Below are positions 1 to 55,677 of a stretch of 64,000 bases of DNA, one piece after another (the first letter of the stretch is position 1; the number at the start of each line of letters is the position of its first letter). The stretch covers positions 10,168,001 through 10,232,000 of the forward strand of contig NC_047028.1 of NCBI RefSeq assembly GCF_902652985.1. The letters run 5' to 3'. Under the pieces are notes generated by a model. The model did not search any database. It saw only the letters and a list, made by a program, of their open reading frames with translations, and had not been told where the DNA came from. Position numbers and translations under genes: made by a program. Origin of the DNA: Pecten maximus (Eukaryota).

Positions 1-2625
1 CAAGGAGAGTAAGATCAGGTGGTCAATGAAAATAGGATCAGGTGGTCCAGGAGAGTAAGATCGGGTGGTCAAGGAGTTTAATATAAGGTGGTTGAGGAGA
101 TTAAGATCAGGTGGTCTAGGAAATTAAGATCACGGGTCCAGGAGAGTAAGATCGGGTAGTCAATGAGAGTAAGATCAGGTGGTCAAGGAGAGTAAGATCG
201 GGTGGTCAATGAGAGCAAGATCAGGTGGTTAAGGAGAGTAAAATCAGGTGGTCAAGGAGAGTAAGATCGGGTGGTCAAGGGGAGTAAGATCAGGTGGTCA
301 AGGAGAGTAAGATCAGGTGGTCCAGGAGAGTAAGCTCAGGTGGTCCAGGAGATTAAGATCAGGTGGTCAATGAAAATAGGATCAGGTGGTCCAGGAGAGT
401 AAGATAAGATGGTCAAGGAGAGTAAGATCAGGTGGTCAATGAAAATAGGATCAGGTGGTCCAGGAGAGTAAGATCGGGTGGTCAAGGAGTTTAATATAAG
501 GTGGTTGAGGAGATTAAGATCAGGTGGTCTAGGAAATTAAGATCACGGGTCCAGGAGAGTAAGATCGGGTAGTCAATGAGAGTAAGATCAGGTGGTCAAG
601 GAGAATAAAAGCAGGTGGTCAAGGAGAGTAAGATCGGGTGGTCAAGGAGAGTAAGATCAGGTGGTCAAGGAGAGTAAGATCGGGTGGTCAATGAGAGCAA
701 GATCAGGTGGTTAAGGAGAGTAAAATCAGGTGGTCAAGGAGAGTAAGATCGGGTGGTCAAGGAGAGTAAGATCAGGTGGTCCAGGAGAGTAAGATCAGGT
801 GGTCCAGGAGAGTAAGATAAGATGGTCAAGGAGAGTAAGATCAGGTGGTCAATGAAAATAGGATCAGGTGGTTCAGGAGAGTAAGATCGGGTGGTCAAGG
901 AGTTTAATATAAGGTGGTTGAGGAGATTAAGATCAGGTGGTCTAGGAAATTAAGATCACGGGTCCAGGAGAGTAAGATCGGGTAGTCTGTTTACGTATCG
1001 TTATATAGCACAAAAAGAACAAAGAATAACACAATAATCATAATTCAAACTCAAAATCGATTCAAACGATATCAAAAATCGATAAATAGATCTGTATGGA
1101 GACTGAAAATGCAGAAGGAGAGTAAGATCAGGTGGTCTAGGAGAGTAAGATCGGGTGGTCCAGGAGAGTAAGCTCAGGTGGTCAATGAAAATAGGATCAG
1201 GTGGTCAAGGAGAGTAAGATCAGGTGGTCCAGGAGAGTAAGCTCAGGTGGTCCAGGAGATTAAGATTAGGTGGTCAATGAAAATAGGATCAGGTGGTCCA
1301 GGAGAGTAAGATAAGATGGTCAAGGAGAGTAAGATCAGGTGGTCAATGAAAATAGGATCAGGTGGTCCAGGAGAGTAAGATCGGGTGGTCAAGGAGTTTA
1401 ATATAAGGTGGTTGAGGAGATTAAGATCAGGTGGTCTAGGAAATTAAGATCACGGGTCCAGGAGAGTAAGATCGGGTAGTCAATGAGAGTAAGATCAGGT
1501 GGTCAAGGAGAATAAAAGCAGGTGGTCAAGGAGAGTAAGATCGGGTGGTCAAGGAGAGTAAGATCAGGTGGTCAAGGAGAGTAAGATCGGTTGGTCAATG
1601 AGAGCAAGATCAGGTGGTTAAGGAGAGTAAAATCAGGTGGTCAAGGAGAGTAAGATCGGGTGGTCAAGGGGAGTAAGATCAGGTGGTCCAGGAGAGTAAG
1701 ATCAGGTGGTCCAGGAGAGTAAGATAAGATGGTCAAGGAGAGTAAGATCAGGTGGTCAATGAAAATAGGATCAGGTGGTTCAGGAGAGTAAGATCGGGTG
1801 GTCAAGGAGTTTAATATAAGGTGGTTGAGGAGATTAAGATCAGGTGGTCTAGGAAATTAAGATCACGGGTCCAGGAGAGTAAGATCGGGTAGTCAATGAG
1901 AGTAAGATCAGGTGGTCAAGGAGAATAAAAGCAGGTGGTCAAGGAGAGTAAGATCGGGTGGTCAAGGAGAGTAAGATCAGGTGGTCAAGGAGAGTAAGAT
2001 CGGGTGGTCAATGAGAGCAAGATCAGGTGGTTAAGGAGAGTAAAATCAGGTGGTCAAGGAGAGTAAGATCGGGTGGTCCAGGAGAGTAAGATCAGGTGGT
2101 CCAGGAAAGTAAGATCGGGTGGTCAAGGAGAGTAAGATCGGGTGGTCAAGGAAAGTAAGATCAGGTGGTCCAGGAGAGTAAGATCAGGTGGTCAGTGAGA
2201 GTAAGATCAGGTGGTCAAGGAGAGTAAGATCGGGTGGTCAAGGAGAGTAAGATCAGGTGGTCCTGGAGAGTAAGATCGGGTGGTCAATGAGAGTAAGATC
2301 AGGTGGTCAAGGAGAGTAAGATCGGGTGGTCAATGAGAGTAAGATCAGGTGGTCCAGGAGAGTAAGATCGGGTGGTCAATGAGAGTAAGATCAGGTGGTC
2401 CAGGAGAGTAAGATCGGGTGGTCAATGAGAGTAAGATCAGGTGGTCCAGGAGAGTAAGATCAGGTGGTCCAGGAGAGTAAGATCAGGTGGTCCTGGAGAG
2501 TAAGATCAGGTGGACCAGGAGAGTAAGATCGGGTGGTCAAGGAGAGTAAGATCAGGTGGTCAAGGAGATTAAGATCAGGTGGTCAAGGAGATTAAGATCA
2601 GGTGGTCCTGGAGAGTAAGATCAGG
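1..2625. repeat. 23-bp minisatellite (consensus CAAGGAGAGTAAGATCAGGTGGT) with higher-order blocks, runs off the window start
   Basis: Tandem unit visible directly. The variant series (…TTTAATATAAGGTGGTTGAGG…TCTAGGAAATTAAGATCACGGG…) recurs at ~75, ~490, ~900, ~1395 and ~1810. The array is interrupted by a non-repeat insert at ~987-1115. Confidence 0.97.
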
Positions 2626-3831
2626 AGTTTTAGGAGAATAAAGTGAAAATTTGCAAACAAAAGAAAAAAAAACAAAAAAACAAAAAACAAAAACAAAAAA
2701 CAAAACATATCTATATGTTTTTAAAATACTGAAATAATAGATCGAATTATGAAAGAAAACCGTATATTAATACAGTTTTTTTTCTGTTTTTCTTTCTCTG
2801 GCACAAGTCGGTGATGTTATAGCGAGGTAGTCCGGATAGATACTCGATTTTAAATCGAATTGAATCTGAATAAATGTTGTAATTTTGAGTGATAGATGCA
2901 TTATACCAGAATATAGCTCTAGGTCATGATTTTGTAATAAAAAGATTGTTAAAGAACACTCTGAACCGATACCAATATTTATCAGAGATTCAACGCAGTC
3001 AGAATCAACTTAAAAATAAAATATAGATTTACTTATTTACGTAAACTTTTATAGGTCATCCTCGTTGGATCGGATAAAAGCACGCGAGTGGTTTTAATGT
3101 GGACGGAGAATCGTAAAAAAAAAACAATGTGGCCGGGCCGGTGTTACGTCCACCTGGCCGCGGAAGCCTCTTGACCATCATTGTAATGATAAACCATGGT
3201 TTTGCAGAAAAAATAGCAATTAGCGAGCTTAGGTAAACTAAACAAGATAAATGGACCATGTTTTAGGCACATTGACTGTATTGAGTTTAGATACACCCCC
3301 TACTTTTCGAGTAAGCAACTCGAGCAGTATGCGTGGTGACTTAGCATGTTAAAGTTATATCAAAGTCTGGCCGGGTATTTCTGGAGTATTTACCGACTCT
3401 CCCTGGGAGGTAAAACAAACACCATGTCAGAATTATACACGCATATTGTCCTCTCGTCTCTGTCTTGTAAACAATATATACATTTGTATATATATATATG
3501 TAAACCATGTAAGCCTAACAATGTAAAGCGTCTGAAGATTTAATGAAAGTGCTAATGTTTCACAGATTATATGATATAAGTAGTTTCCACATACATTTAG
3601 ATATCTTTAATGATGAATCATACCGTATGAAGTCGTAACTAGCATTATAAACTAATAACGAAGGACATCAGCGCTGTCTCAAACATCATTGTAATTTTCA
3701 ACTTGGTTTATGCATAAACCGTACCGACAAAGGTTTTCCTGACAACTAAACAAATCATTTCTTTCTACAATTATTAATTGCACTGGCACGTTTAATTAAA
3801 CACAAATTTCTGATTAAATCAACCAGTTTAA

Positions 3832-7416: not shown

Positions 7417-7678
7417 GGGGAAAACTGCAGGCAGGATTTCCAAGGATCTGTGACGTCAGTGTGTTGGCCAGGTTTGAGTACAGAAAAACACACACGGGGT
7501 ATCAACATAGCGTCAACCTGGTCCATATATTTGCTCGTGAGTATGGTTAAATGACTTCATTATATCAATATATATGTCTCTGAATTAATCCTTATCGAAA
7601 TATTATAGATCTTAAGTTTTCGAATATTTTGTAAGTTTTAGAAAAAAACAAATATGTTTAAATTGAGAAACCGAAAGT
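7417..7678 (+). promoter_or_regulatory. Putative immune-inducible promoter/enhancer of gene A: kB-like, CRE and ISRE-like motifs
   Basis: GGGGAAAACT at 7417, AGGATTTCC at 7433-7441, perfect CRE TGACGTCA at 7451-7458, and GAAACCGAAAGT (IRF-E/ISRE-like) at 7667-7678. The same kB+CRE pairing occurs upstream of paralog B. Confidence 0.5.
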
Positions 7679-8072: not shown

Positions 8073-10015
8073 ATGATTACAACAATGGCACATCAACCAC
8101 GTAAATATGCTAATGTAGCACCCAAACTACCTGGAAGAGAGCGAAAACCTTCAGCTTGTGAATCTTGTAAATGTACTAACTGTAATGATTACGAATCCTG
8201 TAACAGTTGTTCTGTGGTAAACGATGGTTACCTTAGAACAGTCCACGACGAAAAACCACCAGTTCCATGTCGACAAAGGAGATTCACAGACGATTTTTCT
8301 CCAGAGGTATGTTTTAGGGAATCTATGATACAAGAGGATACACCAAAACACGACACTAAACGAATGAAGGAGCTTGATATTCAACTACCATTGCCAAATA
8401 TACCTATTGATTTTCAAAAGCCTGAGCCATTTCAGCATAAGGTCCGGAAACCTTCTGACACCCTTCCCATTCCTAATGCAACAGCAACACCCCAGCCCCC
8501 GCTACACACACAAAGGGCTGATGTGGAACCCGAACATGTCACAACGAACAAAGTGGAACAGGGTCGGCTGGCACAGGTGGATATAACATTACCTAGAAGA
8601 AAAAGTGAGTCTAGAAAAAGAAGAACACGCCAACCTAGGAAAGTACATGTATGGATGAAATTTGGGACCATCGTTTCTATAGTTTTACTTATCGGATTGT
8701 CATATATGATCTTTAAAAGTATTAGAGATATTTGCTTTGCACCGTATCACTATAAAAGCACTTCTTCTCGTCATAAATGGAATTATTCTGAACCAAACGA
8801 ATCTAGACTCGATACAACTATATGTTTTTCATGTGACATAATTGATAAATTTAAAGGAGAGCAGAGTAGATTCGATTTATATGGCTTCAAATCTACCGGT
8901 AACAGACGGCATTGCTGTTTGGACCAACTTGGACATATGAAATGGCTCGTTAGTATGGTAAGTTGGGATGTGACCTTATCTCTGTGTATGTAAACGCATG
9001 TGAATGGGAGGTAACTCTATGAAACAAACTTTTGAATGAATAGATACATCTGATAATTTAAAGGCATAGTATGCTACAGGGTAAAACGTTCATATACTAT
9101 AACAAATTATAATTAGTGAATTTCCCTTAGTATGATTTCATTAGGAATAATTCAATGATTTCATTAGGAATAATTCAATCCCTTAGTATAATTTCATTAG
9201 GAATAATTCAATCTTTGCATTTTTATTCATTTTTTCATGTCTACTTATATAGTGTATTGGATTCAAACTGTAAAACAAACTTTAAAGAAAAAAAATATTT
9301 ATTTGTTTCAGATGAAAACGAATGAAATTTTGCAAGATGAAGTGAGGGACAATTCTTCGACTACAGTATGCCCAGTGAAGGCTACACTTGTGCCAATCCA
9401 AAATGGAAGTAAGTCTCTTATAAACATTTACCCTCTTACTCCTTCAGAAAATAACAACGGTATAATATACAATATATATATACCCATATGTATTGCGTAT
9501 TTTATTAAGAAAATCAATTTAATAAGACAGATCGTTGAAAAAAATGGTAATGTATATTTATGTATGTGGCATGTATCTTAAATTAATTATTATAATATTG
9601 TATAATTTCAGACAAGACCGATTTAAAACTGAACAATACGGCTTTGCAAACACACTGTAGAGGAGCTTCGATAAATGTGACAAAGGACGCCCTAGTGACC
9701 AGAAAGGACGGATTGTATATTGTGTACATGACTATGTCAGTAAAACTAGCTTCAAGACAAACAGAAGGGAACGGACAACATGGAAACATTGCATTGAAAG
9801 CATATCTTTTTTGCAGTAAATCTAAAAGGGGAAAATGTATTGAAATGGAGACATTTAACAAAACCATAACGTATAGTGACCAAAATTTTCATGTGTTTAA
9901 TTTGTACACCGTGAAAAAATTTACAAATGGAGAACACTTTTACCCAGTGCTGTCCGAGCCGGGATATCTATACACAACGACAAAGGGTAACTTTATCGGT
10001 GTTGTGGAACTTTGA
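8073..10015 (+). CDS. Gene A: divergent TNF-superfamily ligand-like type II membrane protein with a long cytoplasmic tail, ~461 aa. Coding exons 8073-8957, 9312-9408, 9612-10015
   Basis: Acceptor at 8041-42 precedes ATG 8073. Donors ATG|GTAAGT (8958, phase 0) and GGAA|GTAAGT (9409, phase 1) and acceptors TTTCAG (9311, 9611) join in frame. TM FGTIVSIVLLIGLSYMIF follows a polybasic stretch, and the stalk has CFSC…HCCL. The last exon has the THD motifs LVTRKDGLYIVY and GNFIGVVEL*. Confidence 0.82.
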
Positions 10016-10077: not shown

Positions 10078-13019
10078 GCGTCAGTTAAAAATAGGATGAG
10101 TGTAAAGAGGAGCCTATCTGTGTTCGAGAATTACACATACAAAAAATATATGTTAAAGCAATGTGATAGGAATAATTTGTGCCAATATTGACAGTAACTT
10201 CATAACCTTGACCATATGTACCTACTTGTGTAAAGGTTGCATTTCATATTAATTAAAAAATCATTACATTTGTCAATATTTCACCTGAACAGTAAAAATA
10301 ACCCTTAATTTAATATATCGTCGTGGCGTTCATCTGACGACGACATTATCAATTATACATAACAATTAATGAACGTATGCTATTATTTATTTAAACAATT
10401 ACGTTTACTTACACAATCTGCATTATCATTAAAGCGATCTTAAATCACTAGTCAGTACTAGCCATTTATTTTTTCCGAAATACTATTTTGAATGTCACAA
10501 CATACTTATACAAGTCCTGCGACTGATATCCAAGGGATGACTCGCTCTGCCTTGTTTATAAACAATGATCACGACAATTATACCGCTTTAGTGACTTATA
10601 AACAAATATTGTAAATAAAATAAAATGTATGTTTTAAATGCAAAATAAAATAATCTTTTTACAACTTTTGTTTGACTTTTTCTTTTCTTTTCCGTTTGAG
10701 TGTATACTGCTAATGCTACATAAATAGTAATATCATAAGTAAAACAAGAACTGTATAAGCCAGGTAAGATATAGATTGATGTTATTGATTTTACGTTGAG
10801 ACAAGACCACAAGACTAGATATTTCAAATGGTCAGCAAAAGCCAATCACGAATTAAGCTATTGTGTATTTTCAGTATTACTTAGGTTTGAAGTATGAAAA
10901 AGATACATTAATGCAAATAATGAATACAACCATTTATCTAAGAACGATAAATGTACAAATAATGAATAGGACAGTTTATTTAAAAAAAATCATCATATGA
11001 ACAATTAATACATGTACATGCTTTTATCTAACAAAGACACAGCAGAAAAATAATGAATACACACACTCATCTAACAAATATATATTTTACTAATAATGAA
11101 TACAATTATTTATATAATACGATACAATATACAAAAAATGAATACAGAAATTAATATAACAAAGATACACTATGCAAAATGAATACACAGATTCATCTGA
11201 AAAACATTTTTAAAAATACTTTAAAAATAATTAATACAATTATTCGTCTAAAAGGTGTCTCGTTCGTATAAAATACACCATTAATGTTTTAATATTTTGA
11301 TGTATAATGATGCAACGATTATTGAGATTTTTCAATTAAGATACACATTTTCTTTTGGAAAAAATACGTTAAGAATGGAGGACCTGCAAATGTTTATCCC
11401 GGGCTAATGTCCAAAATAGATATCTTGCCTGACTTGGGTAAACCCCCTTGCGGGGCCTCTACTTTATTGAATGTTTTTATCTTATTTCACACAGTTACAT
11501 ATGTAACAGTAATGTATATCCAGATACTCCTCGCAGCAGTCTGGTTGCACGTACATATACGTATGCGAGTTCTGCATTAACACTCGAACAAGCACTGGAT
11601 TTCCATAGGATTTACTGGACAAGTTCTAAATTAAATATAGCCTTAATCTAAATCAAACACTGTTTACTTCTCAAGTTGTAAATCTATAATGCATAATATC
11701 ACAACAGTGTGTCGGCTTAAAACGTCTGACAAAGTGAGATCAAACAAATATAATAGCTCTATTTTTGTCTGTGTGGTGAACGACATATAACAATACGAAC
11801 TTATTTTGTGTGCGCATTGCTTGACAACCATATGCAGTTCTTTAAGTAAGCAGAACACTTGAGATCAGTAGACTCGGCCAACATGACGTTTAGGCCGCGA
11901 TAATGAGTTCTGAGAAACTCCGATTATCACTTTCGTTTATGCAAGACCCCAATGTGAACTTAAATAGGCAAGCTACGTTATGTAGACTGTTTACTCTCAA
12001 CTATATAACAATGTTAGTTTTAATTTGCATAAATGTTGATATAATAGGTTTTGGTAGAATTAACTTGACAAAATTTTATGAAACTACAATACTCGTCAGT
12101 CTCTTTCTATCTTCCTATTTTAAAGAATACACACATTCAGGTTTTGAAGTAAAGGTGTGTTTTTTAATTGTTTTAGGTTAAGGAAAACAAACAGGATATT
12201 AGTATTCGGTAAAAGTTACTGGCTAATGATTCTGTAACAAGCACAAAAGTGAGTTACACATCGATATATGATTTTAACAGAATATTATAATATTTTAAAA
12301 GAATATATATAGAGGAAATTCAATGGTTTGCCGTTTAATATCAAATTATTTAAATCGTAAGGCAGATGTTTTTTCCCCTATTTTCACGCGTGCGTTGCAA
12401 GCTATTGGGAAATATGGACATCATTCAACAAATACGACCCGACCAGATTATCCTATGACTATCTTGTAATATAACCGGGAATAGTTAATACTTCTCCTCC
12501 AGACTACAAAAGACACAAACACGCACATTTCCAAACGAACTTGAGGGAGTGGGATAAAGTAGAGGAAACACGAGTTAAACTTCGTGGTACATCTTATTTT
12601 AGATTTATTTTTTATCTCTGATAGAAGACCTACTCTGTAAATCATCTGTTTCTTTGTGTTTTATCTAAGGTCAAACAGTATACTATCATTTTGTTTTATG
12701 GCGCGGTAAATAAAAAAATAAAGTGTATATCATATGAAGCGATACCTCGAAACGAACAAATTGACTTAACATCAATTTATTTATAGCTATGTTTCACTAT
12801 TTGTCAGATCCTCTGGTAAAGTAGCTATGTTTCACTGTTTGTCAGTTTCTCTGGTAAGGTAGCTATGTTTCACTGTGATATATAACACATACTAAATATG
12901 CCTTTCTGTAATGAATCGGCAATGATGAAAATTGTAAATGAAATATGATATACTTTATAACGAATACAATACAAATTATATCAATCACTTCCGCAGGCCT
13001 GTATGGAAACGTTTAAAAG

Positions 13020-13140
13020 GTCCAGCTGGACTACCCGGAGAAAACCCACGTGGACAGACAGGTGACTCAAATCAAACCACGGCCGCCTAGGCGAAAGTCT
13101 GACCATCCAAAAGTGCTGCCAAACAGTGCCAGTCAAGCTC
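13020..13140 (-). mobile_element. SINE-like fragment
   Basis: The reverse strand reads GTGGGTTTTCTCCGGGTAGTCCAG, which resembles the conserved central domain of invertebrate tRNA-SINEs. Recognised from memory only. Confidence 0.35.
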
Positions 13141-13724
13141 TGATATTCCCGATCGGTTATTCCTTGGCAAACAGCTTTACCGGAATTTTTATTCAGTTTA
13201 AACATTTTTTTCCAAATGAAAGATCGCATCATCATCTTTCTTTTTATTTAAAGATAATTGAATGGTTTGAGTGATTTAATGACAAAAATAGCACAGGAAG
13301 GTCTCAAAAATGAAATTTTACACATTCAAACGAAACAGTCATTTCAACTCAAAATCGAAAAAACGAAAGCAGATTAAAAAAAAAAAAATAGATAAAAAAT
13401 TTAAAAAAAAAGAAAAAGAAAAAAACATCTGCATGGAGACCATTTATAAAAATATAAGGAGAATAAGTTCATGTGTTCCCGATGGTTACGCGTCTTCATC
13501 AATAACATGTGGCGTCTTCTTGACCTGCTAGATTTTACCTGACGACAGGTGTGAACAGATCTTTTGGATCAATAAAGGTATACTACGATAGTATATACAT
13601 GTACATGTGTGATATACATACTGATTCGTGTGTGTATGTCAGGTAGAATGATGTCAGCTTGTAGCGCTCTTTAGTGTTTAGTAGTAGGCAGGTGTAATTC
13701 ACCTCTGACACAAAAATATTTACC

Positions 13725-13790
13725 GGGGAATCCAGTGACGTCAGACAACTACCTGGTGAGGAAGGCCTTATGATTGTGCATGGGGAAAGT
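13725..13790 (+). promoter_or_regulatory. kB-like + CRE module upstream of gene B
   Basis: GGGGAATCC at 13725-13733, TGACGTCA at 13736-13743 and GGGGAAAGT at ~13782. The CRE is ~620-650 bp upstream of the ATG in both A and B. Confidence 0.5.
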
Positions 13791-14390
13791 TTAATGATTT
13801 TGTGAGTATGAATAAACAAAACATGAATTGTGACAAGCTTAAATATTTATAATAAGACATTGTCTTTCTATCTAGTGTCTCTATAAACAATAAACGTGTG
13901 CAACATATATGTTGTCTTATCGATATATGTATGTGGGTGATTTCATGAATGATTACATGTTTCTCACTAAAGATATGCACTGCATGTGTGACCTGGGAGG
14001 GATGAATGCGCTATATATTTCTTGAAATTTCATATTTCCTCTGGACAATATTATCTACTCTTGGTGTATAGATATAAATCATTAATAAACAGATCTACAT
14101 GTGGTTCCGTAATAGCGTATAATGATATATGTGCATTTAACTAGATGTATATCACTAGGTAACATATTCTGATTCGTAGTCGTAAATAGTATCACTTTGA
14201 AGATGACATTTATTATAACAATGATGTTATTGTACTAATTTCAATTGATTTGTGACCGAAATCTTAATTTAATATTACATACGATAGTAGTTATTGAAAG
14301 GCATATCGCAGTATAAAGTATTTCAACTTTTAACTGTTTTTCTTTTTTTTTTTTTTGCAGAAAATCATAGATCAATGGTATCAGCCGATA

Positions 14391-15251
14391 ATGGCTGATC
14401 TGGTCGAACAATATTCAAGTCTGGAAACACTGTCAACTGACACGCTAAACATATGTAGATGTACTCACTGCTGTGAAAGTTACTCCAGTAACGATTCCTT
14501 TGGATACCTCGATGTTACCCCAGCTAAATTACCTATACCTTGTCCACAGAACCAACTCCCCGATTCCTTTTCTCCTGAGAAAAACTTTGTTGAAAGAACG
14601 AGAGTGAGTGAAGAACGCGAGTTAGATGGGAGACAAACAAACAAACGATGGCAAACTTCTTTTCCGTTTCAACAAGATGTCTTTCAGTTGGAGGGCAATT
14701 TGATTGAAAAATCAATTAGAAATGACAGCCAGGTGAAACAAAATGGTTCATGTCGACAAAATCAGTTACATGAAAAGTTTCAGACGGATATCAGTTGTGT
14801 GCCAACCACAAGTTGGGAAAATAATATAACAACGGCACGTGAGAGCCTTAGTCCAATGGCAAATGGTATTGAAATCCGAATGACTGTTGATGATCGGGTG
14901 ACTGGAAGGGGCAATCAACCATCAAATTTCACCTCTGCTCTCTTACCAGAACACGTCCGTCAACAACAGCATGCAGCGAGTTACAAATTTGTTCGATGTT
15001 ATCCTTTAGACGTATCTTCTCAGAATTCGCTTAAAGTACTTTCTTCTCGATGCTGGTATAGTCAACCATCATCTGGCGAATTACCTGATTCAAGTTCGGG
15101 GGGAATGATTCAGCCTCTGGTTTCTGGATGCAATATCAATCATAAACGAGGACAGAGCTGGATGCATGTGCAACGAAAAATCGGAATATTTTTCCCCGTC
15201 ATTATTTTCATTTGGTTAGTCTATATGCTCATTGAGAGTGTCTTTGAATAA
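14391..15251 (+). CDS. Gene B: paralog of gene A exon 1 (cytoplasmic tail + TM), 286 aa, ending just after the TM with no TNF domain. Either a truncated gene or a pseudogene
   Basis: Strong acceptor (T)nGCAG at 14359-60, ATG at 14391. CRCTHC…GYL…LPIPC…DSFSPE aligns with A's CKCTNC…GYL…PPVPC…DDFSPE. TM IGIFFPVIIFIWLVYMLIES aligns with A's FGTIVSIVLLIGLSYMIFKS. TAA at 15249. Confidence 0.65.
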   Translation: MADLVEQYSSLETLSTDTLNICRCTHCCESYSSNDSFGYLDVTPAKLPIPCPQNQLPDSFSPEKNFVERTRVSEERELDGRQTNKRWQTSFPFQQDVFQLEGNLIEKSIRNDSQVKQNGSCRQNQLHEKFQTDISCVPTTSWENNITTARESLSPMANGIEIRMTVDDRVTGRGNQPSNFTSALLPEHVRQQQHAASYKFVRCYPLDVSSQNSLKVLSSRCWYSQPSSGELPDSSSGGMIQPLVSGCNINHKRGQSWMHVQRKIGIFFPVIIFIWLVYMLIESVFE

Positions 15252-16256
15252 CCATGTGTATGTCATCGTTTTCATGTCTCTCAGAGACTATCAACCGCTA
15301 TTATGTATTCTTAAGTGTAACCTTTAACGACCGAAAATGAGATTCACACAACTTGACAATGCAAAGTCGGGTACTGTAGACAAGATACCGTGGATTATGT
15401 AGACTACAGCGAATATTTTTAATGGGACTAAAATTCTAGCTTACAATCAATTCATATGTAAGAATGATATCGTCAAGGACACAATACATGTGAATCAATC
15501 TTTAACAGGGTTAAATCAACACGGTATCCCGTGAAGCGATAAACGATAGGCACATGAACGAACACCGGGCATCCTATGCCTTTTTTGGATGTTATCATGA
15601 TCTTGGAAATATTCTATTTCCGTATGCAATATGAAGTCAGACGTTTTTGATGCCTGTTGATATACCCAATGGTTCCATTGTCACCACCCTAATTCACATG
15701 GAACACATCCGATTTTATGTCTCACAAGAATATATTTCCCCTAACGATATTATGACCTGCATCAATCCTTAGTACCCGAAACCATAAGTTCTTTTTGTAA
15801 GTGTTTCGTCGGTAGTCGAGATCTTTCGGAGTAAATGTGATATTCTTGAAATATCACGCGTTGAAACCCGGTGTTTTAATTTTCCATCTCGGCCAACATA
15901 TTGACATTCTAAGAAAGAATACTTATAATGTGTATTTTTGAACCATAACTCTTTACTTAAATTGAAACAACTGCAGTTTGTGAAAATGAAAGATCGTTTG
16001 ATATCTCAATCGTAGTATATACATACTTTACTAATCCTAATGTTTCATATACAAATGATAGGAAAAGATATTTCAACTGTTGATTCTGAGACGAATGCAT
16101 TGTATATTACATTGTTTCAAAAAGTATTTTAATTGATCTGTCCAATGGTATCAATCATGCAGATTTTGTAAGTTTAGTTGACCTGAACCAAAATCGTTGT
16201 TTACATTAGCTTGATAAACACCACCACTCTTTTACCATAATAATTAATTTGAATTA

Positions 16257-17590
16257 CAAACTCGAAATGTTGTATCATCAAAATTATAAATGTTTCCTCT
16301 TGGGACATTTCAATTACAGGTACAAATTAGATTCAGTCAACCAGACACTTCATTCAATGCTTACATCGGCGTCAGTTTACAAGCGTTTGGCTGAGACAGT
16401 GACATGTAATGCACAGCATTTATGACTTTTTATGACTCGCTTTTGTTAAAAATAATCTAATTCTCGGAATTTATATTGATTCGTCACTGGGGATTCCAAT
16501 CTTTCTAAGTACCCGACGAGTCATGATATGTCTATCATTAGACGATACCGTATCCTCGTTAGTAACAGACAACCGTCGGGTATTTTTTCAGCATTCATAT
16601 ACGTAAATGCTGAAATAATCATGCATCCATCCGTCTCACCATCTTTATTGTATTATTATATATTTTGTCCTGGTATTGCGCTGTTGTTTGCTTCCGGGTT
16701 TCTATTGTATTTGCAGCATTATAATCGGTCATAGCTCCTTTTTTAGGCAGCAGAAAAGGGTGACTTATTTGGAAGTCAGTCGCCGTACTTCGGACGTTGC
16801 AAGAGAAATCTGTGAAATGGAACTTATGTTGAAGACAGTGGATATTTTCGATATCCATGTCCACATGACGGATGTCGCTACTTCTCAGGAAATCAGTATT
16901 ATAATTGATGAAGTTTCCATGACTGATGATTCGAAACAATTAGTTTATTGAAGTTCCCTTGATTGGTGATAGAAAACAGACATAACATTGAACTTACTGA
17001 GATCAGAGGATGTCTGTACCGAGGATCCTCTATATCGCATTGAACTGTTGTCAAACTTATTGACTCGACATCAGAGGATGTCTGTACCCAGGATCCTCTA
17101 TATCGCATTGAACTGTTGTCAAACTTATTGACTCGACATCAGAGGATGTCTGTTCCCAGGATTATCTTAGTGCCTTTATAATGTATTGTATGGTAAGCGA
17201 ATTACGGTGTACGTTTGCATTAATTATTGTTTATTAAAAAGTGGCCAAGATCTTCCAATTATGCATTTGTTGAATTATTTCTTTAATATTGTCCATGTCA
17301 TTGATGTATGATAATTTGTATCACTAACTCGAAATGGTGTATCACCAAAATATGAAATGTTTCCTGTGGGGACTTTTCAATTACAGATACCAATTGGATG
17401 CAGTCAACCAAACACTAGTCGATCCGATGCTTTCATCGGCGTCAGTTTACAAGCGTTTGGCTGAGACAGTGTACATGTAATGCACAGCATTTATGACTTT
17501 TTATGACCCGCTTTTGTTAAAAATAGTCTCTTATTCTCGGAATTCATATTGATGCGTCACTGGAGACTCCAATCTTTCTAAGTACCCGAA
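16257..17590. repeat. Pair of ~265-bp direct repeats (16257-16520, 17325-17590) flanking ~800 bp that includes a 68-bp tandem repeat (17002-17160)
   Basis: AACTCGAAATG…CATCGGCGTCAGTTTACAAGCGTTTGGCTGAGACAGT…CCAATCTTTCTAAGTACCCGA is present twice. Confidence 0.9.
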
Positions 17591-18999
17591 GAATCCCCAG
17601 TTATTTTTTATTTTTTATTTTTGTGTGTGTGTGTGTGTGTGTGTGTCCACAACTTACAATAAGTGTATACATAGTGTCACACACTTATAAAGTATTGTTG
17701 ATAAACGTTTGACGTCATGTGAGAATGATATCTCGTGCGATTTGCGGACCATCACCCAGATGAGAATAAAAGGAAGCTAGCGCCGAAAACGTCCCATAAA
17801 CATAACGAAGGCGTATAAAAGTATAAATAATGTCAGACACTTTAAAAAGTATCAACCCGTCGTAACATTAAAAAAAAATTGGAATAACTATTGAAGCAAG
17901 CATATATCGAATAATAGATTAAATGACGATGTCTAAATATCGTTGTATCAAAATGATTTGCTTTGAATCATTATTTCTTAACAAATGAAACAATCTTAAC
18001 GGGAAATGTTTGTCATCTTCTTCACAAGACATGCCTGCTGATGCCAATCGTGAAATGGTGTTGAGGCATTCTATTATGTTCTAATATAAAGGAACACAGC
18101 TTACCACGCCAGACATGTGTTACAATTATCTTATATATTATCACAAAATCCTAAATGGACAGCGGTTAGAAATCGAAAACGAAAAAAGATAACTGATGAA
18201 GAGTTAGTATTGAAACAACAGCGGGTAGTTCTCCTAAAATTGCTCTAACACCTCCAGGATTAAACAGTTATGTGACGTAACTGTCTGATTTATGCTTTTT
18301 ATATTAATCTCAATCTGCATTTTCTTACCGGTAAAGGTATTTATTAATACTTATGTTGCAAAGTAATGTCAATATATTATTCTAGAGTGTATGGTCATGC
18401 CTAGAATTCTGATGACAATTATGTACTTGAGGAAGTAGTCAAACTGGAACCTGTCACATGTAACAGGTATGGTACGAGTTCCTGAACAAAGTTAAGCAAA
18501 CTAGATTTACCTCCCTTGGTGGGTCACATGTTTAAGCAGTCACTAGCGAAGAAGAAGACGCTTAACGCGGTTTATTTGAGAACAACTTTGAGAGGGGATT
18601 GCAAGCGGTATATTAAACTCCAACTAACTAAAGAATATATTTTGTTATCATAAACGATAATGAATTGGTATCATATAAAAGTGTAGCGGATTAAATATTT
18701 TATTCTGATGAACATAATGTTACATAAAATTGATATAATTTATAAAATGTATATTGCTTTTTTGATATTGTGGTTTCTGGATGGAAATTGACATTGTTAT
18801 TCGAACTGCTCACCTTCAAATTTACTAAATCTATGCATTAAGAAGTTTTATAAGTACTAAAATCTCCCTCCCAATCGCCCTCCCTCCAGCCCATTAACCG
18901 CCGGCCTTCTGGTAGATCCATCAACTCATCTACCTGTCTGTCTACCTACTTTCTCATCCGTCCATCTATCTATCTACATGTATATATGTTAGCCTGCCC

Positions 19000-19415
19000 T
19001 GTAGGACGTTCCTGCTGCTACATGATCGTAAAAGGCGACTAAAGTTGGGATCTTATCTTTTCTCTATTTTTAAAGTTACTTTTGTCGTCCTTGTGTCTCT
19101 CTTGACGTTGACCTACTTTTGACCTGTAGGAAGGCTTTGTCTACTGGCCGAGCCATATACTCCTGAAGCTTTGGGAGTGAGACGACTGGTCCGCCCGTTG
19201 TCGGTATAATGTAATTTGGTGGAGTGTACTGCTGGATGTCTTCGGAAGTATACTCCATTGAGGTAGCACTATAGAGTCGGCATCATTTCCAAGTATTTCA
19301 CAAGGAGACAGGTACGAACATAAAGCACACACAATTCACTACACGCATGCACCTCGCACACAAGGAAGATGGCATTAGCTGTTGATAGGGCGTTAACAAT
19401 ACACAACCAAACAAA
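19000..19415 (+). mobile_element. SINE-like interspersed repeat
   Basis: CGTAAAAGGCGACTAAA motif and a 3' tail GCTGTTGATAGGGCGTTAA…CAACCAAACAAAA resembling invertebrate SINE ends. Not verified. Confidence 0.4.
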
Positions 19416-19915
19416 ATCTACATTAGCCGCTTTACCGTTCTATCCACCCGTGTACATTAATGGTACATGTATACCATATTTTTTTGTTCCTAACAAACTA
19501 CCAACGCCACCATGTAAGGATACTTTTTTTCTAAACAACCGGTCATTTTTGTTTATCTGGCCTATTAAAACAAACACAACAAAAATAATGACATAATAAT
19601 GAAACAATATAAACAAAAGTCACTGTAAGCTTTTGATATATCGACACCTCATGCCTGTGAGGGATTTATGTTTCCTTAATTAGTTCAAGAGTAATTTCCA
19701 GTTTAGATATGCCAATTGGAAGGCATGATATAATGTTGTATTTATACAGCCATTTGGATTTCCACATAAATAGGTCATGTGTTATCGCCTTACCAGGAAA
19801 TTATATTTTTCACCATACACGCGTTTATCAAAGTACTTGTTTCGTATCTCGCTGTGCAGACCTTTGGCGCACACTGCGATGTAATGTTCCTGGTTGATTA
19901 AAACCTTACCGTAGT

Positions 19916-22161
19916 ATGTCTAACTCTGTTCACTGTCAATTGAAACGCTTGATTCAAGCGAGTGTAGTTGGGAACGTTCTTTTGCTTGCTGCGCTAGTGA
20001 TCCTATATATAGTACATAAGACACTACAGGACCAGTCCCCAAACATCACACCAACACCAAGTGTGGACGCCCTGACAGACAATGCAGGACAGGTCTGTCT
20101 CCCCTGTGACTTTCAGGGACAACAATCGGGCGATACTTTGTACGAGTTCATATTGAAGACTGACAACAACAAAACACTTTGCTGTCTGCAACGCGATGAT
20201 GTTCTCCAGGATCTGATTCTTGAGGTGAGTCGTTTGTTTTATCGATTTATTGATTTATTCATTAAACCAGTGTCCTAATAATTCTGATGTTTGTTTAACG
20301 TTTTCATGTTTTTTGTTTTTGTTATTGCAGCTGGAAGAAGAGAACGGGAAAAGATTGCAAACAAACAGTGGAAAACGTAAGTCTTTTGTTATTACACTAC
20401 TTACAGTCAAACCTGTCATATGTGACCTTCCAAGACAATATAAAGGTCACATATGACATAAGCTCTCTTAATCCAGGTTCGGGAAACTAGTGTGGTAAAT
20501 AACATTTGGAGTGAAAACTTCGGCCACATATTAGAAGGAGACACTTAATTCAAGTGGTCACTTAACAGGTTTATTGTGTTTTGAAAACGTACCTTGAACC
20601 AAACGATATACCGCATTCAGGAGTTAGCATCACGTTGCCCTTTTACTTTTTACTGGTGCCACATCCAAACCTGTCTCATTACTACATCTTATATAAATCA
20701 GCGCTCACAAGGACTTCTAGGATTATTAGCACTGGACATCATCTATTAATGCCCCGTATCCCCTACCGTCCCAGCTTCTGTATCATCAGGAATCAGTTAA
20801 TCTAATCTGTTTCATTAACATTAATCGGACAGTCCCCGCATTATACCTACTTGATTACATGTTATTCGTAGGAGGTTACTAAGAGCGTTCCCCGGGGAAT
20901 AAGGAGTTTGTTCCGCGTCTGTATAAGTTAAATTATAATGATCTGGTGTAATGAAACACATATTGTAATAAGGTTAAGTATTGTTTAACGTGTTGCAAAC
21001 TTTTAAGAAATTTCTTCTGCTCAGACTAGTTTGATGTAATGAAAAAACGCGCACTGGTATGATATACACAGTATTACCACTATGTGAGATACCCTCTTTG
21101 AACTGAAGCCGCTTCCGCACTACAGAGATGATATGAAGTTACTATTATCCGTCATGTATATCTGAAATTATGCTGTAATGATTATTTTTTTACAAGTAAG
21201 GATTTAGAATGACATCTGTCTAACTTCTGCTATCTTACAGCCATACCAAAGACACTACGTTGGTGGACGGAGAGAAATCACGCCGCACATCTCTACGCTA
21301 GTGACATTCGAATTGGTCAAAGTAAGACATTTTCTCATTAGAAATCATTATAAACTGTAATATATCGTTTTGAAAACTTAATATGAAAATACACAAGGTT
21401 GCGAAATAAGTTATATCGGAAAGCATTACATTCATCCTCAGTACTTCCCTGTGCAATATGAAGGTTAATGTGTAAAATGAAAGGGAAAAGAAGCTCACCC
21501 TACCAGTAAGGAAATTCCATACCGTAAAATTTCCTATAGTAAAGCATTGGAAACATGCCTATTAAGGAACACCCTTGGCCTTGTACTTTATATGTTTCAA
21601 TGATAATTGTAGAATGTAGAATTAAGATATCATAAGCATGTTAATATACTCTATTTGTCTCTGTTAAATATATAAATGAACATCAATTACCGTTTATCTA
21701 TGTAAATTCTTTCACTCGTTTCGATAGATTTATCCTGGAAACAACGTGGCATCAGAACATCATTTATACGGAATCTGACGTTGAGTGATGACGGGAGGCA
21801 GTTGGCTGTTAACACGATGCCTGGTGCAGGATTGTATTTCGTTTATGCTCTATATACGTTTGACTTCACCAATGCAGCGACCAACAGACAATCACCAATG
21901 GGTATCCATAACATCTACAAACACCGACCGGCTATCATCAACAGTGAAAAAGAGAGACTTTGGACGGCGAAGTTTGGAGGCACCAACTCGGCGAAAAGAC
22001 AGACAAGCTTCCTTTGTGGAATCGTAAATATGAATATGTTGGACACAATAGAATCTGAGGCCATTTCCTATGTGGCAGGAGAAGAATGCACAACCAGATA
22101 TATAGACAGATCGCCATATTCTAATTATTTTGGCATGTTCAAACTAATTGATTTGTCGTGA
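19916..22161 (+). CDS. Gene C: TNF-superfamily ligand-like type II membrane protein, 289 aa. Exons 19916-20224, 20331-20376, 21241-21321, 21728-22161
   Basis: All introns are GT-AG with phases 0/1/1, and the 870 nt read in frame. TM VVGNVLLLAALVILYIV, stalk CLPC…LCCL, then RWWTERNHAAHLY, LSW, GAGLYFVY, TSFLCG, NYFGMFKL. AATAAA at 22237. Confidence 0.9.
20402..20578. mobile_element. Small MITE-like element in gene C intron 2
   Basis: Imperfect terminal inverted repeats TACAGTCAAACCTGT … ACAGGTTTATTGTG, which resemble Tc1/mariner-type ends. Confidence 0.5.
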
Positions 22162-27740: not shown

Positions 27741-30700
27741 ATGGGTAGGATATTATGTACCTCGAAACAACCAGGCTACCTTGAAAACCTGAGGCGGGCA
27801 TTTCATTTCAGTGTTGCAGTAAACGTTGTATTGGTCACAATATTAGTGATTCTATTTGTTGTTCGTCAGACGCTTCGTAACAAAGACATTCCAGCTACTG
27901 CTACCCCGACAACAGAGCCCTTTCACAGATGATACAGCCGGACAGATATGTCTGCCTTGTGACTTCCAAGGACAGGAAACGGTCGATACTCTGTATGCGT
28001 TCATGCTGAAGACTGACAACAACAACACCCTTTGTTGTCTTAAGCATGATGATGATCTACAGAGCCTGGTTCTTGCGGTGAGCAGATTTACCGAATCAAC
28101 ATAAGATGTTTTAAACAATTGTTACATTGTTTTTTTTTTATTTATTTCTATTAGTTATTTTATTTTGTATTTCAGCTAGAAGAGGAAAACCGGAATAACA
28201 GACACTCCAGGCAGGGGACAGGTTTGTAGTATCAGTGTACTGCTTTTACTGTTTTCTACGAAAAGCACACATTATAATTTGTCTCTGGCAGGCCATGCTA
28301 CATTTAACGGAGGTATCGGGTGTCATCATGGTGTTGTGTCCCTTCAGTTAGTAGCTTGGAATTGGTGACTTCGCAGTAGTTAATTTCGGTTTGCCTTTTC
28401 AAAGCCAAAAATAGGAACTTATCATATATTTTCAAATGAATTAGCCCACTTCTCACATTGGATTGCCTTCTAGGCAGGCAAAGTTGAAAATATTTTTGAA
28501 ATTGACTTATTCACCTGATTTTTTGTTAAAGGACTTAGGCTCGGAAATCGTGAAAACATTATTTATATCAAATCCCTAACTCTCGTCGCCAAACAAATAC
28601 AACGTGTAAAATATAAGTAACCACAGACTGGTTAGAATATTAAGGGCTTGAATATATCGCAGCCCATTATTTCAAATGGTAAGGAAATATTGAAGTCTTT
28701 CAATAAAACTTCAGGGGATTTCGAGTAAAATTGCACTTTTATTTTACAAGATAAATTGCGATGGTGGACGGAGAGAAATCACGCCGCACACCTATACGCA
28801 AGTGACCATTCCGCTGGTTCAGGTGAGTAAACAATTTGACCAAAAAAGCAGTCCATATTTTACTGTTAAAACTGAAAAATAGCGTCGATTCATCAAGGGT
28901 TTGTACTGGATGGACTCCCGTCAATGTGTCATTGCAAAAACAAAAAAAAAAAAAAAAGGATTTCTAACCTTGTTACGAATTCCGGTTAACGTTGTAGTTA
29001 GATTTCCCTCACGAATAATAATAAAAAGGGGGGAAAAAAATCTGTGTTTAATCTTGTAACCAGGAAGTTATGTTTGAAGTATCTGCTGACCCATACTTGG
29101 TCAGAAAATTCACCTATATAAACGAAGCGTGTTGCATATCTATCATCATTCTCTAACGAAGGTCTATTATTCTAAACGTACTAGTAAATATAATACAGTG
29201 TATTAATATATACATTTTAAGCAACCTGGAAATGTAACCTTTATTTTTATTATTACCTTGATTACCTGCTTTACTGGCCCGTTGTGCTCAAAGACTCCTT
29301 ATATATACATGAAATAAATTTCATGTTTCAATTCAACTAGATATGTCCCTTAATCAGCTATATATTCATATATAATTAAAAGTAGATAATGTCCTTGTGA
29401 TGGATATACATTGTAATAATAATAATAAAAAAAACACAAACCAGATAATCACAAGCGCTTTCACAGGCTTTGAATGACAATGACCAAAAGTATACAAAAA
29501 TATAAAATTGATGACGTCAAAATAAAAATATATACAATTGAAAATTATATAAAGGAAAACAACTGTTTTTACAGTAATATTGATTTGGAACTAAGCAGAA
29601 CTACATGAATCAAGACTTGGTTTAAATAGATTAATAAACATATTTTCTTTTGATTCCCTTTCTATAGCATCTGAGCTAGACATTTGGTATATAGAACATC
29701 GGTACATATGTTTACTAACTGTTAAAAATCTTAGATGGTCTGTTCCTATTTGCTGTTAATGTACTGTCATACGTTTTATAATTTCGTTGTCAGTCTGGCC
29801 AATGTAAAATTCTGAACAATTTTTGCAAATCATAGCATAGATAACAATTTTAAATATACAATTCATATTTGCTTTGATTTGAAATTTAGATCCGTTTTTG
29901 AACGTATAACTGGAACATTCTATAATACTTTTAAATGTACCACATCTAGGCCTACCACATTTAGATATACATGGAATTTGCTGTTCAGAATCAGATTTTG
30001 AACGGCATAATAAACGTTTCAAATTTCTTGGTTGTCGCTTACAATTTGTGATTTTATTTCTGTCTAATACCTTTTTCATCTTGTCACTATTCTTAAGAAA
30101 ATCTTCACAACTTCTAATGATTGGAAAGATATTAAAATCTAAATAATTGTGTGAATCTGTTGGTTTACAATATAGATCAGTAGTAATAATGTTGTCTTTC
30201 AATTCTACTAAATCATCAAGAAATGGTGAATGTATAAAAAAAAAAAAATAACGAAAAAACAAGACTTTGCCGCGCTGGCCTTTCAGCCCTCTCAGGCTTC
30301 TGCAGGCGGACTGAACATATAGGAGTAACGATTAAAGTACTTGTCTTATTTTGAAATAATGTGTTGTCTTCATTGTCTATACAAATGTAATTTATTCTGC
30401 TATGTTATAAAAGGTTTATCCTGGAACCATCGTGAAAGCAGGACGTCACTTTTACGGAATTTGACGTTAAGTGATGACGGGAGACAGCTGGCTGTTCACA
30501 CGATGCGAGGAGCAGGAAGTTACTTCGTCTATGCCTTATATACGTTTGACTTCAGCAACGCAACGTGGGACAGAAAATCACCAATAGGCGTCCACAACAT
30601 CTACAGACACCGCCCGACTATCATCAACGCCGAAAAACAAAGACTGTGGACGGCGAAGTTTCGTGGCGAAAAAAACGACGAAAAGACAGACGAGTTTCCT

Positions 30701-30848
30701 TTGTGGAATCGTTAACATGAACATTCATGACACTTTAGAATCCGAGGCCATTTCGTATGTAGCAGGAGAGGAGTGCACGTCCAAATGCATTGACGGATCG
30801 CCATATTCCAACTTTTTTGGCATGTTCAAACTTATCGAGTTTACCTGA
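27741..30848 (+). pseudogene. Gene D: closest paralog of gene C, with two +1 frameshifts (pseudogene or assembly indel errors). Exons 27741-28077, 28176-28221, 28751-28822, 30414-30848
   Basis: Same exon phases and motifs as C (CLPC…LCCL, RWWTERNHAAHLY, GAGSYFVY, TSFLCG, NFFGMFKL). There is an extra T in TTT at 27921-23 and an extra A in A7 at 30669-75. Splice sites are intact and I saw no other stops. Confidence 0.85.
29620..30235 (-). mobile_element. Penelope-like retroelement fragment (RT C-terminus + GIY-YIG endonuclease) in gene D intron 3
   Basis: ORF 29756..30262 contains TDLYCKPTDSHNYLDF, RQPRNLKRLL, CGRPRCGT and NC…VIYAMICKNCSEFYIGQT. Confidence 0.85.
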
Positions 30849-31599
30849 CTAAACTTCTGATGCAACAAAGTTATTGTTCTGGTATTATTGCTCAGTAAAA
30901 AAGATCAAATAAAACAAGGAACTGTTTTCTGTTCTGCAAATGATTTTCCTTCAATGACACCAATAAACAATAGACTCGTACGACAATAATTTATGTCTAG
31001 ATAAAGTATCACCATTTAAGATGGTTTTATCCGATCATCAAATATTGAAAATATAAAAAGTGCAATATATATATGAATATGCTATGGATAAAACACGCGT
31101 GAAACGGGAACATATATTAAGAAGCGAAATTTTCTAGTAAGAGACTGGGCAGCCCGATATCCTGACATGATCATAGCAAAACAGCGTCTATAAGATTATA
31201 TGAATACCTGGATGGCAAGGTGATATGCATGCACCAGTGAGAATTGTACACAAATAACATATATTTCAAATCCTTAATTTCAACAGAACAGAGTGAATAT
31301 GATATATTGTGTAAATGATTAGATATACAACGTAGTAAAACAAATGAGGAAGGAAGATGAATGTTTGATTCCTACCCAGACCAGGCCTGGTATACGTAAA
31401 TATCTACACTTAATATGAAATACAAATGTAGAAACATTAACAGCATAATTTACTTGTAAACAATGCATACACTAGGAAACACACAAGTACATGACCGGAC
31501 AACAGAAAGAAAGCCAATATATAGGACTTGATAAATCCACAACAAATGTGTATGTAAAATTAGCCATCTAAGAAGGAGTGAACTTGTTACATAGTTGAA

Positions 31600-37500: not shown

Positions 37501-38150
37501 ATCGGTACAAATATAGAAAAGTAAAGTATTTACAAAGTTGGTACAAACATAAAACAGTAGAGAATTGACAAAGTGGTACAAACATGGACAGTAAGAGTAT
37601 TGACAAAGTTAGTACAAACATAGAACAGTAGAGTATTTTTAAAGTTGGTACAAACATAGAACAGTAGAGAATTGACAAAGTTGATACAAACATAGAACAG
37701 TAGAATATTGACAAAGTTGGTACAAACATAGAACTGTAGAGAATTGACAAAGTTGGTACAAACATGGACAGTAGAGTATTGATAAAGTTGGTACAAACAT
37801 AGAACAATAGATTATTGACAAAGTTGGTACAAACATGGACAGTAGATTATTGACAAAGTACGTACAATCATGGACAGTAGAGTATTGACAAATTTGGTAC
37901 AAACATAGAACAGTAGAGAATTGACAAAGTTGGAACAAACATAGAACAGTAGAGTATTTTTAAAGTTGGTACAAACATGGACAGTAGATTATTGACAAAG
38001 TTGGTACAAACATAGAACAGTAGAGAATTGACAAAGTTGATACAAACATAGAACAGTAGAGTATTGACAAAGTTGGTACAATTATAGAACAGTAGAGAAT
38101 TGACAAAATTGGTACAAATATAGAACAGTAGAAAGGAAGTTGGTACAAAA
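31600..38150. repeat. ~6.5-kb minisatellite of mixed 35/36-bp units (GTACAAACAT[AGA/GG]ACAGTAGAGTATTGACAAAGTTG), roughly 185 copies
   Basis: Direct tandem array. All minus-strand ORFs here are translations of the repeat. Higher-order periods of ~495 bp (32060-33050) and ~285 bp (36630-37250). Confidence 0.98.
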
Positions 38151-38449
38151 TATAATTTTAATTGGATAGCAAGCAATGGCTTAATAAATATTCTGTGTGA
38201 ATACCTTAAGTACATAACATGTACTTCATTATTTACGTAGGATAAATCATTTTTGTTCATATATATATGTTTAATTCATTCTTTTCATAATACTAGCAAA
38301 ACTGCCTTACTATTTGGTCTCAGATAAGATATCACAAAATAGCTAAATAGCCCTAACCCTTTACAAAAGTACTCCGAACATGTATTCATGTGTTACGTCT
38401 CTTTCCAAGAAAGTTATGACATAACTGTTATTCCAGGGACTCTAATCTT

Positions 38450-54234: not shown

Positions 54235-54838
54235 ACCTCCGCTCTTCCTGACTCCTCCAGCTCTCCTCACATACAGTGATTGATCAATACTGACTCATTC
54301 AGCTCTCCTCACATACAGTGATTGATCAACCCTGACTCCTCCAGCTCTCCTCACATACAGTGATTGATCAACCCTCACTCCTCCAGCTCTCCTCACATAC
54401 AGTGATTGATCAACCATAACTCCCCCAGCTCTCCTCACATACAGTGATTGATCAACACTGACTCCTCCAGCTCTCCTCACATACAGTGATTGCTCAACCA
54501 TAACTCCTCCAGCTCTCCTCACATACAGTAATTGATCAACCATAACTCCTCCAGCTCTCCTCACATACAGTGATTGATCAACCATAACTCCTCCAGCTCT
54601 CCTCACATACAGTAATTGATCAACCATAACTCCTCCAGCTCTCCTCACATACAGTGATTGATCAACCCTGACTCCTCCAGCTCTCCTCACATACAGTAAT
54701 TGATCAACCATAACTCCTCCAGCTCTCCTCACATACAGTGATTGATCAACCCTGACTCCTCCAGCTCTCCTCACATACAGTGATTGATCAACCGTGACTC
54801 CTCCAGCTCTCCTCACATACAGTGATTGATCAACCCCG
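54235..54838. repeat. 42-bp minisatellite (CTCCTCCAGCTCTCCTCACATACAGTGATTGATCAACCCTGA), about 14 copies
   Basis: Direct tandem array. ORF 54295..54816 is its translation. Confidence 0.97.
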
Positions 54839-55607: not shown

Positions 55608-55677
55608 TGACGTCACCGTTATCTCCCTTATACATTTACTCCGAAATAACTATTTTTAGAACTCGGTGGGAATACCC
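55608..55677 (+). promoter_or_regulatory. CRE + kB-like sites upstream of gene G
   Basis: TGACGTCA at 55608-55615 and GGGAATACCC at 55668-55677, about 60-130 bp before the ATG. Confidence 0.55.

Follow-up and report, generated by a model that had tools for sequence, protein, structure and literature searches.

The 64-kb stretch of Pecten maximus DNA analysed in this work (the window, contig positions 10168001–10232000, which contains no N stretches) raises the question of whether a TNF-ligand gene whose reading frame closes just after its transmembrane segment (TM) is a gene remnant, a full-length gene with missed exons, or a retained gene with a product of its own. The window holds a same-strand tandem array of TNF-ligand genes, A–G, within which long cytoplasmic tails are confined to A and B. 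In genes C–G the tail is short and is followed by the TM and then by a CxxC...CC stalk. The long ORF of gene A matched Pecten maximus LOC117342692 (461 aa) with 98% identity across the queried part, and gene A was represented by its public protein together with single exons, with no joined model. The genes to which gene B is compared are as follows.

8073–10012, + strand: gene A, LOC117342692, the complete paralog used as reference; public protein P0001, 461 aa
8073 to ~8960, + strand: gene A exon for tail, TM and stalk
inside 9207–9578, + strand: gene A small exon
inside 9596–10012, + strand: gene A THD exon, matched by Pfam TNF (E 0.0017, below the gathering score)
19910–20227 plus 21706–22158, + strand: gene C
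27913–28080 plus a THD in two frames, 30329–30845, + strand: gene D

The THD of gene D is broken by a frameshift into overlapping frames (30329–30712 and 30588–30845), and gene D is therefore probably a pseudogene. Its intron holds a 168-aa minus-strand ORF (29756–30262) with a GIY-YIG-like ending, which may be a mobile-element fragment.

Transcript and reading frame of gene B

Stretches of gene B are contained in 19 public RNA runs from eight studies. RNA contigs of four of these runs, each from a different study (X1, X2, X5 and X15), were mapped on 13500–19499. Such contigs tell neither strand nor exact ends, and rare isoforms can drop out of them; the strand of the transcript is known because the splice gives it. 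The features of the locus are listed here.

13725–13743, + strand: putative B promoter module, a kB-like site GGGGAATCC, then ag, then the CRE palindrome TGACGTCA
13756–13801, + strand: B exon 1, 5' UTR, from the X15 contig; the 5' limit is a minimum
13802–14360, + strand: B intron 1, 559 nt, GTGAGT...poly-T...CAG
14361–17241, + strand: B exon 2, the last exon, with a short leader, the coding sequence and a ~2-kb 3' UTR; the 3' limit is approximate
14391–15251, + strand: B coding sequence, 286 codons plus TAA; ATG context ataATGg
14454–14588, + strand: cytoplasmic block CxCxxC...P..C...DxFSPExxF, residues 22–66, conserved with respect to A
15111–15125, + strand: B-lineage juxtamembrane motif QPLVS, residues 241–245, found in Pecten, Argopecten and Mizuhopecten B
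15180–15233, + strand: B transmembrane segment, residues 264–281, followed by the five residues ESVFE and the stop
15252–17241, + strand: B 3' UTR, transcribed, with no recognisable stalk or THD relic
16245–16522 and 17312–17595: direct repeat of ~280 nt, copies 85–96% identical and 1070 nt apart
16999–17134: 68-nt tandem pair in the B 3' UTR

The X15 contig (record 9) maps to 13756–13801 and then to 14365–15197, and joins 13801 to 14361 across an intron with GTGAGT...AG ends. The splice acceptor named in the first-pass annotation, which had been made from the DNA letters alone, is thus real. Contigs of X1 and X2 start at 14365, preceded by 39–51 letters that were not placed; exon 1 has depth in both runs. 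Overlapping contigs from the four runs are continuous from 14365 across the stop to 17051, 17119 or 17241, and RNA cover over 17300–18900 was zero in all four. An ATTAAA at 17233–17238 lies near the 3' end of the transcript, which seems to end just ahead of the second copy of the direct repeat. The B mRNA consists of two exons, of which the second contains the stop and a 3' UTR of ~2 kb, so that no exon junction lies downstream of the stop. Its leader includes three out-of-frame upstream ATGs (13770, 13780 and 13794) that open short uORFs. RNA data, proposed at the outset as a check of expression and of the 3' end, show that the gene is transcribed and spliced, with cover to ~17120–17241.

Two minor features of the RNA mapping were also recorded. 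In run X2, and in that run only, a contig skips 16448–16890; the corresponding joint (16447>16891) was rejected as a splice, having AA..GA ends and lying in the 3' UTR, much of which consists of the first copy of the direct repeat and the 68-nt tandem pair. A low-depth X1 contig covers 13438–13588 and ends exactly at 13588, between aaag and the GT of gtatac; it may be noise or mark another first exon of B further upstream.

The kB-like and CRE elements are motif matches that form a putative promoter module, which ends 13 nt ahead of the earliest base covered by RNA. Retention of a kB and CRE module had been claimed, and a kB-like GGGGAATCC with a perfect TGACGTCA does lie upstream of B exon 1. 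The gene A promoter carries GGATTTCC, a 9-nt gap and TGACGTCA at 7434–7458, and the Argopecten B promoter carries GGGAATACC-a-TGACGTCA at the corresponding place (locus 9929–9946). The comparison between the A and B promoters is one of short motifs only, because blastn finds no DNA similarity between the A and B regions. Five copies of the palindrome TGACGTCA are present in the window (7451, 13736, 17710, 29512 and 55608), where 0.8 are expected; the copies at 7451 and 13736 are those of the A and B promoters, and that at 55608 lies 130 nt before the ATG of gene F.

The B frame (14391–15248) comprises 286 sense codons and closes with TAA at 15249–15251, in surrounding DNA of ~0.37 GC, which agrees with the 858-nt open frame in AT-rich DNA first reported. 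Measured from stop to start, the ORF of 298 aa is the second longest non-repeat ORF within the window. The TAA is unchanged in contigs of X15, X2 and X5, which come from three independent studies; indels in the B ORF were absent from the RNA contigs.

Similarity of B to A is confined to two regions. In BLASTP, 22/52 residues of the Cys block are identical (42%, E 1e-6), as are 9/27 of the TM region (E 1e-3), with no alignment outside the two. In an alignment of nine A and B proteins from Pecten, Argopecten and Mizuhopecten, CxCxxC, P..C and DxFSPExxF are invariant. The conserved block originally described therefore stands for these three motifs and for the TM, which align with A, but not for GYL, which P. 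maximus B alone among the B proteins has in common with the A proteins. The TM of B is homologous to those of A and of Mizuhopecten B.

Residues 264–281 form an 18-residue hydrophobic stretch, and the frame closes five residues later, consistent with the earlier description of a stop a few codons after the TM. The remainder of the protein is hydrophilic and predicted to be disordered. AlphaFold2 gave a confident helix at 256–284 (pLDDT 65–91) and a disordered remainder with a mean pLDDT of 41. This TM is the only one in B, lies near the C-terminus as in tail-anchored proteins, and is accompanied by no signal peptide. By the homology of its TM, B would have a type II orientation, with an N-terminal cytoplasmic tail and a single TM, and it is predicted to be a tail-anchored membrane protein.

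The exact 286-aa product was absent from protein collections of 5.8 billion and 1.84 billion entries. Gene A of the same P. maximus assembly is on record as a protein, unlike B, which the P. maximus annotation apparently skips; B has probably not been called as a protein there. A word-index protein search with B alone returned no match, and when the query was the aligned B proteins of all three scallops, the same search returned Mizuhopecten B only. The best score for B in the ESM Atlas was 0.83, under the useful range, and a Pfam search of the B protein found no domain.

Orthologs of gene B and the absent ectodomain

In Mizuhopecten yessoensis, the A ortholog is followed by the start of a gene that carries the CRCTHCC motif of B. 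Its product (P0004, LOC110467236, 423 aa) is encoded in three coding exons and possesses the tail, TM, CxxC...CC stalk and THD. In Argopecten irradians the B protein is P0005 (XP_069104991, 344 aa), with isoforms of 345 and 335 aa, and a 1251-nt Logan contig of the transcript yields a 334-aa product (P0008). Both the 335–345 aa models and the transcript contig stop ~10 residues past the TM. The Argopecten locus reads full-length A, B stub (ORF 10801–11907) and a C ortholog with a THD, and the 4.1 kb between the stub and C contain no THD-like ORF of at least 40 aa. A profile of B and the Mizuhopecten N-terminus, searched against 1.84 billion representatives, retrieved just two proteins, P0004 and P0005.

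The A-B-C gene order is common to Pecten, Argopecten and Mizuhopecten. This shared order, together with the CRCTHCC and QPLVS motifs, places B by descent among the TNFSF genes, as a paralog of A and the positional ortholog of the complete Mizuhopecten ligand. The A/B duplication is older than the scallop radiation. A literature search for a survey of scallop TNFSF genes found none that was relevant. As a side observation, the Argopecten A ortholog (locus 2545–3783) has extra N-terminal repeats of 'ERKTSACEQKFNPP' before the CxCxxC block, so that tail length in this lineage shifts by internal repeats.

The intact THD exons of genes C, E, F and G, four in all, served to build an HMM of the domain. 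It recovered all five copies in C–G, including both frame-shifted pieces of D, and gave no match in 10100–19900. When full-length Mizuhopecten B was searched in six frames against the whole 918-Mb P. maximus genome (E up to 10), the matches were A exon 1, the THD of A and the N-terminus of B only, with no relic after B. The C-terminal THD of TNF superfamily ligands (PF00229) was thus not found in B by Pfam, by the HMM, by the six-frame search or in the exons of the mRNA. The first-pass annotation had seen no THD exons before gene C and had suggested a search for them downstream of B; HMM, Pfam and the Mizuhopecten B query all came back empty. Its description of a decayed ectodomain was not upheld, as the DNA after the stop is without detectable relic and is partly repeat element. 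Its picture of a tail-anchored, ligand-less B fits the predicted topology and the missing THD, and Mizuhopecten keeps the full ligand.

Over the last 86 residues, P. maximus B and Argopecten B are 35% identical and 60% similar (E 9e-15). QPLVS is present in both stubs and in Mizuhopecten B; the tail segment VRC...QPLVS is lengthened in Pecten and Argopecten, and Mizuhopecten is without this lengthening. The two stops are offset by four codons, with the Pecten TAA over an Argopecten AAG and the Argopecten TGA over a Pecten TGT, so either one of them is secondary or the truncations were independent. Argopecten is sister to Amusium plus Pecten in Pectininae, and Mizuhopecten lies on the Chlamydinae side (PMC11354973). 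Because the sister lines of Argopecten and Pecten carry the same stub, the loss probably predates their split; with two Pectininae species compared, a single truncation in the ancestor that Pecten and Argopecten share is the simplest and most parsimonious history and the probable one. That no THD relic can be detected indicates that the truncation of B is old.

Constraint on the frame and rival readings

Constraint on the DNA was assessed from MAFFT pairs, with identical columns counted by hand from the invariant-column lists.

Pecten versus Argopecten B, last 86 codons: 143 of 258 columns identical (55%), one in-frame 6-nt gap
Pecten versus Argopecten B, first 258 nt after the stops: 105 of 288 columns identical (36%), several gaps
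Unrelated control DNA: 98 of 316 columns identical (31%), several gaps

The DNA after the stops is therefore at chance level between the two species. All 18 TM positions are hydrophobic in both Pecten and Argopecten B, and the middle ~150 residues cannot be aligned between species. Among the P. maximus contigs, two sites vary in the 861-nt B ORF, and 20 sites vary in ~1800 nt of the B 3' UTR, together with three indels. Both ORF polymorphisms, as read from the contigs, are non-synonymous changes at second codon positions (C136F and V189G). Taken together, these comparisons are suggestive of constraint on the B frame since the truncation.

Gene B is probably a retained protein-coding derivative of a TNF ligand, without stalk and THD, that is predicted to form a tail-anchored stub and was truncated in the stem of Argopecten and Pecten. 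The first-pass view that it is not a dead pseudogene is supported by its transcription and splicing, by the Argopecten stub, and by coding DNA that is conserved where post-stop DNA is not. A reading that we regard as unlikely, without dismissing it, is that B is transcribed as a unitary pseudogene or lncRNA, in which the frame and motifs are leftovers and an intact promoter drives transcription. The lack of a Pfam domain, the absence of B from the public protein sets searched, the uORFs in its leader, the non-synonymous nature of both ORF SNPs and the fast evolution of its central region are in keeping with this, and the frameshifted THD of gene D demonstrates that array genes do decay. A unitary pseudogene is nevertheless hard to reconcile with a frame that is intact in two genera and a gene that is expressed and spliced. 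Keeping 286 codons open at a stop frequency of ~7% per codon has a chance of ~1e-9 (a base-composition estimate), and the same architecture is open in Argopecten over 335–345 codons. The motifs are invariant and the TM hydrophobic while the 3' UTR DNA is at chance level, and the loss of any THD relic marks the truncation as old, yet the ORF is intact. That B is really full-length, its stalk and THD exons having been missed through assembly error, divergence or an internal donor onto gene C exons, is very improbable. A donor-like GTTAGT does occur in the TM codons (TTG followed by GTTAGT, ~15214) and contigs lose rare variants, but the contigs of four runs read straight through ~15214 to the stop. 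They contain no joint from the B ORF onto other exons, which also speaks against the internal-donor route that had been raised at the outset, and transcript cover is lost over 17300–18900. Neither the HMM nor the Mizuhopecten B query located a THD-like ORF before C, and in Argopecten both the NCBI models and the transcript contig end at the equivalent stop.

The retained-gene reading includes a single truncation in the stem lineage. Independent and convergent truncations in Pecten and Argopecten, each possibly fairly recent, would explain why the stop codons differ in position by four codons and why the post-stop DNA cannot be aligned, but we consider such a history decidedly unlikely. Two stops falling within four codons of each other in an ectodomain of ~240 codons would not be expected unless selected, the THD relic is undetectable in both species, and both share the lengthened VRC...QPLVS segment that Mizuhopecten is without. 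Convergence, moreover, would itself favour selection of the stub.

Possible roles of a ligand tail without an ectodomain

As a retained stub, B would be transcribed from the kB-like and CRE promoter as a two-exon mRNA, and its product would comprise ~263 disordered cytoplasmic residues carrying the invariant Cys/FSPE block, one TM helix at the C-terminal end and then five lumenal residues. TNF ligands assemble through the THD. B had initially been proposed as an adaptor or a dominant-negative partner of A. The adaptor role is conjectural; as B is without the domain that mediates assembly, classical co-trimerisation with A is unlikely and was set aside. The product would be expected neither to bind receptors nor to co-trimerise with A, so that any action would lie inside the cell, via the conserved tail motifs. 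One option is that B engages or titrates the cytoplasmic partners of the tail of A, either as a ligand-independent 'reverse-signalling' module or as a competitor. It is plausible, and likelier than a co-trimer, that B competes for partners of this common motif block or recruits them.

A second option is that B, similar to the N-terminal remnant of a shed ligand, could be cleaved constitutively by intramembrane proteases of the SPP/SPPL family, with release of the tail. PMC10509304 describes cleavage by SPPL2a/b of tail-anchored proteins and of N-terminal fragments of type II proteins. The predicted shape of B, type II or tail-anchored with a 5-residue lumenal stub, corresponds to that of an SPP/SPPL2 substrate as outlined there, and the P. 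maximus genome contains at least three SPP/SPPL loci. Processing of B as a ready-made stub by SPP/SPPL is, by analogy, plausible. A more specific and speculative proposal, which we hold to be possible but doubtful, is that B is a genetically encoded 'pre-shed' stub, inducible through kB/CRE, that is constitutively cleaved by SPP/SPPL or docks partners of the A tail, in either case producing ligand-independent reverse signalling via the Cys/FSPE block, and that has been kept since before the Pecten/Argopecten split.

With the type II TNF ligands (PF00229; P. maximus LOC117342692 and M. yessoensis LOC110467236), B shares descent, an N-in tail, the Cys/FSPE block and the position of the TM, and it differs from them in having neither the CxxC...CC stalk nor the THD and in placing its TM at the extreme C-terminus. 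Scallop gene A has a like promoter module and the same layout of a 5'-UTR exon plus acceptor. Like clients of GET/TRC40, B has one TM within its last 25 residues and a predicted cytosolic N-terminal bulk; unlike them, it has its origin in a type II signal-anchor protein whose insertion is co-translational. The N-terminal fragments of TNF-alpha and FasL that remain after shedding are described as SPPL2a/b substrates in PMC7366577 and PMC10509304. The predicted B product has the same shape as these shed stubs, a ligand tail, a TM and only a few lumenal residues, but its stub is encoded directly by the gene and would require no sheddase. The tails of vertebrate TNF and FasL have no detectable sequence similarity to the scallop tail.

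Vertebrate TNFSF genes also give rise to THD-defective splice isoforms, such as delta-BAFF, a non-ligand product with a proposed regulatory role. Isoforms of this type keep part of the THD, act by co-assembly and come from an intact gene, whereas B is a separate locus, its THD is gone from the genome, and the stub occurs in at least two genera. An autonomous function of TNF-family ligand tails, by 'reverse signalling' or release of the intracellular domain, is disputed and has been studied mostly in vertebrate cell culture. B seems to be a natural deletion experiment in this respect, the ectodomain having been lost and the tail motifs, anchor, promoter and expression kept in two genera, and the sister subfamily in Mizuhopecten, which retains the complete ligand, provides the contrast. 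It offers a clean system for the tail-only function of TNF ligands, with the invariant CxCxxC...P..C...DxFSPExxF block as a handle for a partner search, in a gene that the protein annotation of P. maximus apparently omits. Were the pre-shed proposal true, B would represent a natural uncoupling of tail function from receptor binding in a TNF ligand; if B were untranslated, it would be a well-documented old, transcribed gene remnant.

Several features of the window lie outside gene B. Very deep RNA contig cover (to ~1200 in X1) falls on ~45 nt at 19021–19065, with unrelated flanks, and is probably due to a short repeat common to abundant transcripts elsewhere, outside B and C. A minisatellite of ~6.8 kb (31450–38260, minus strand) has strong GC and AT skew and yields long artefactual ORFs with MFVPTLSILYC-like repeat units, and a second protein-like tandem repeat is located at 54295–54816.
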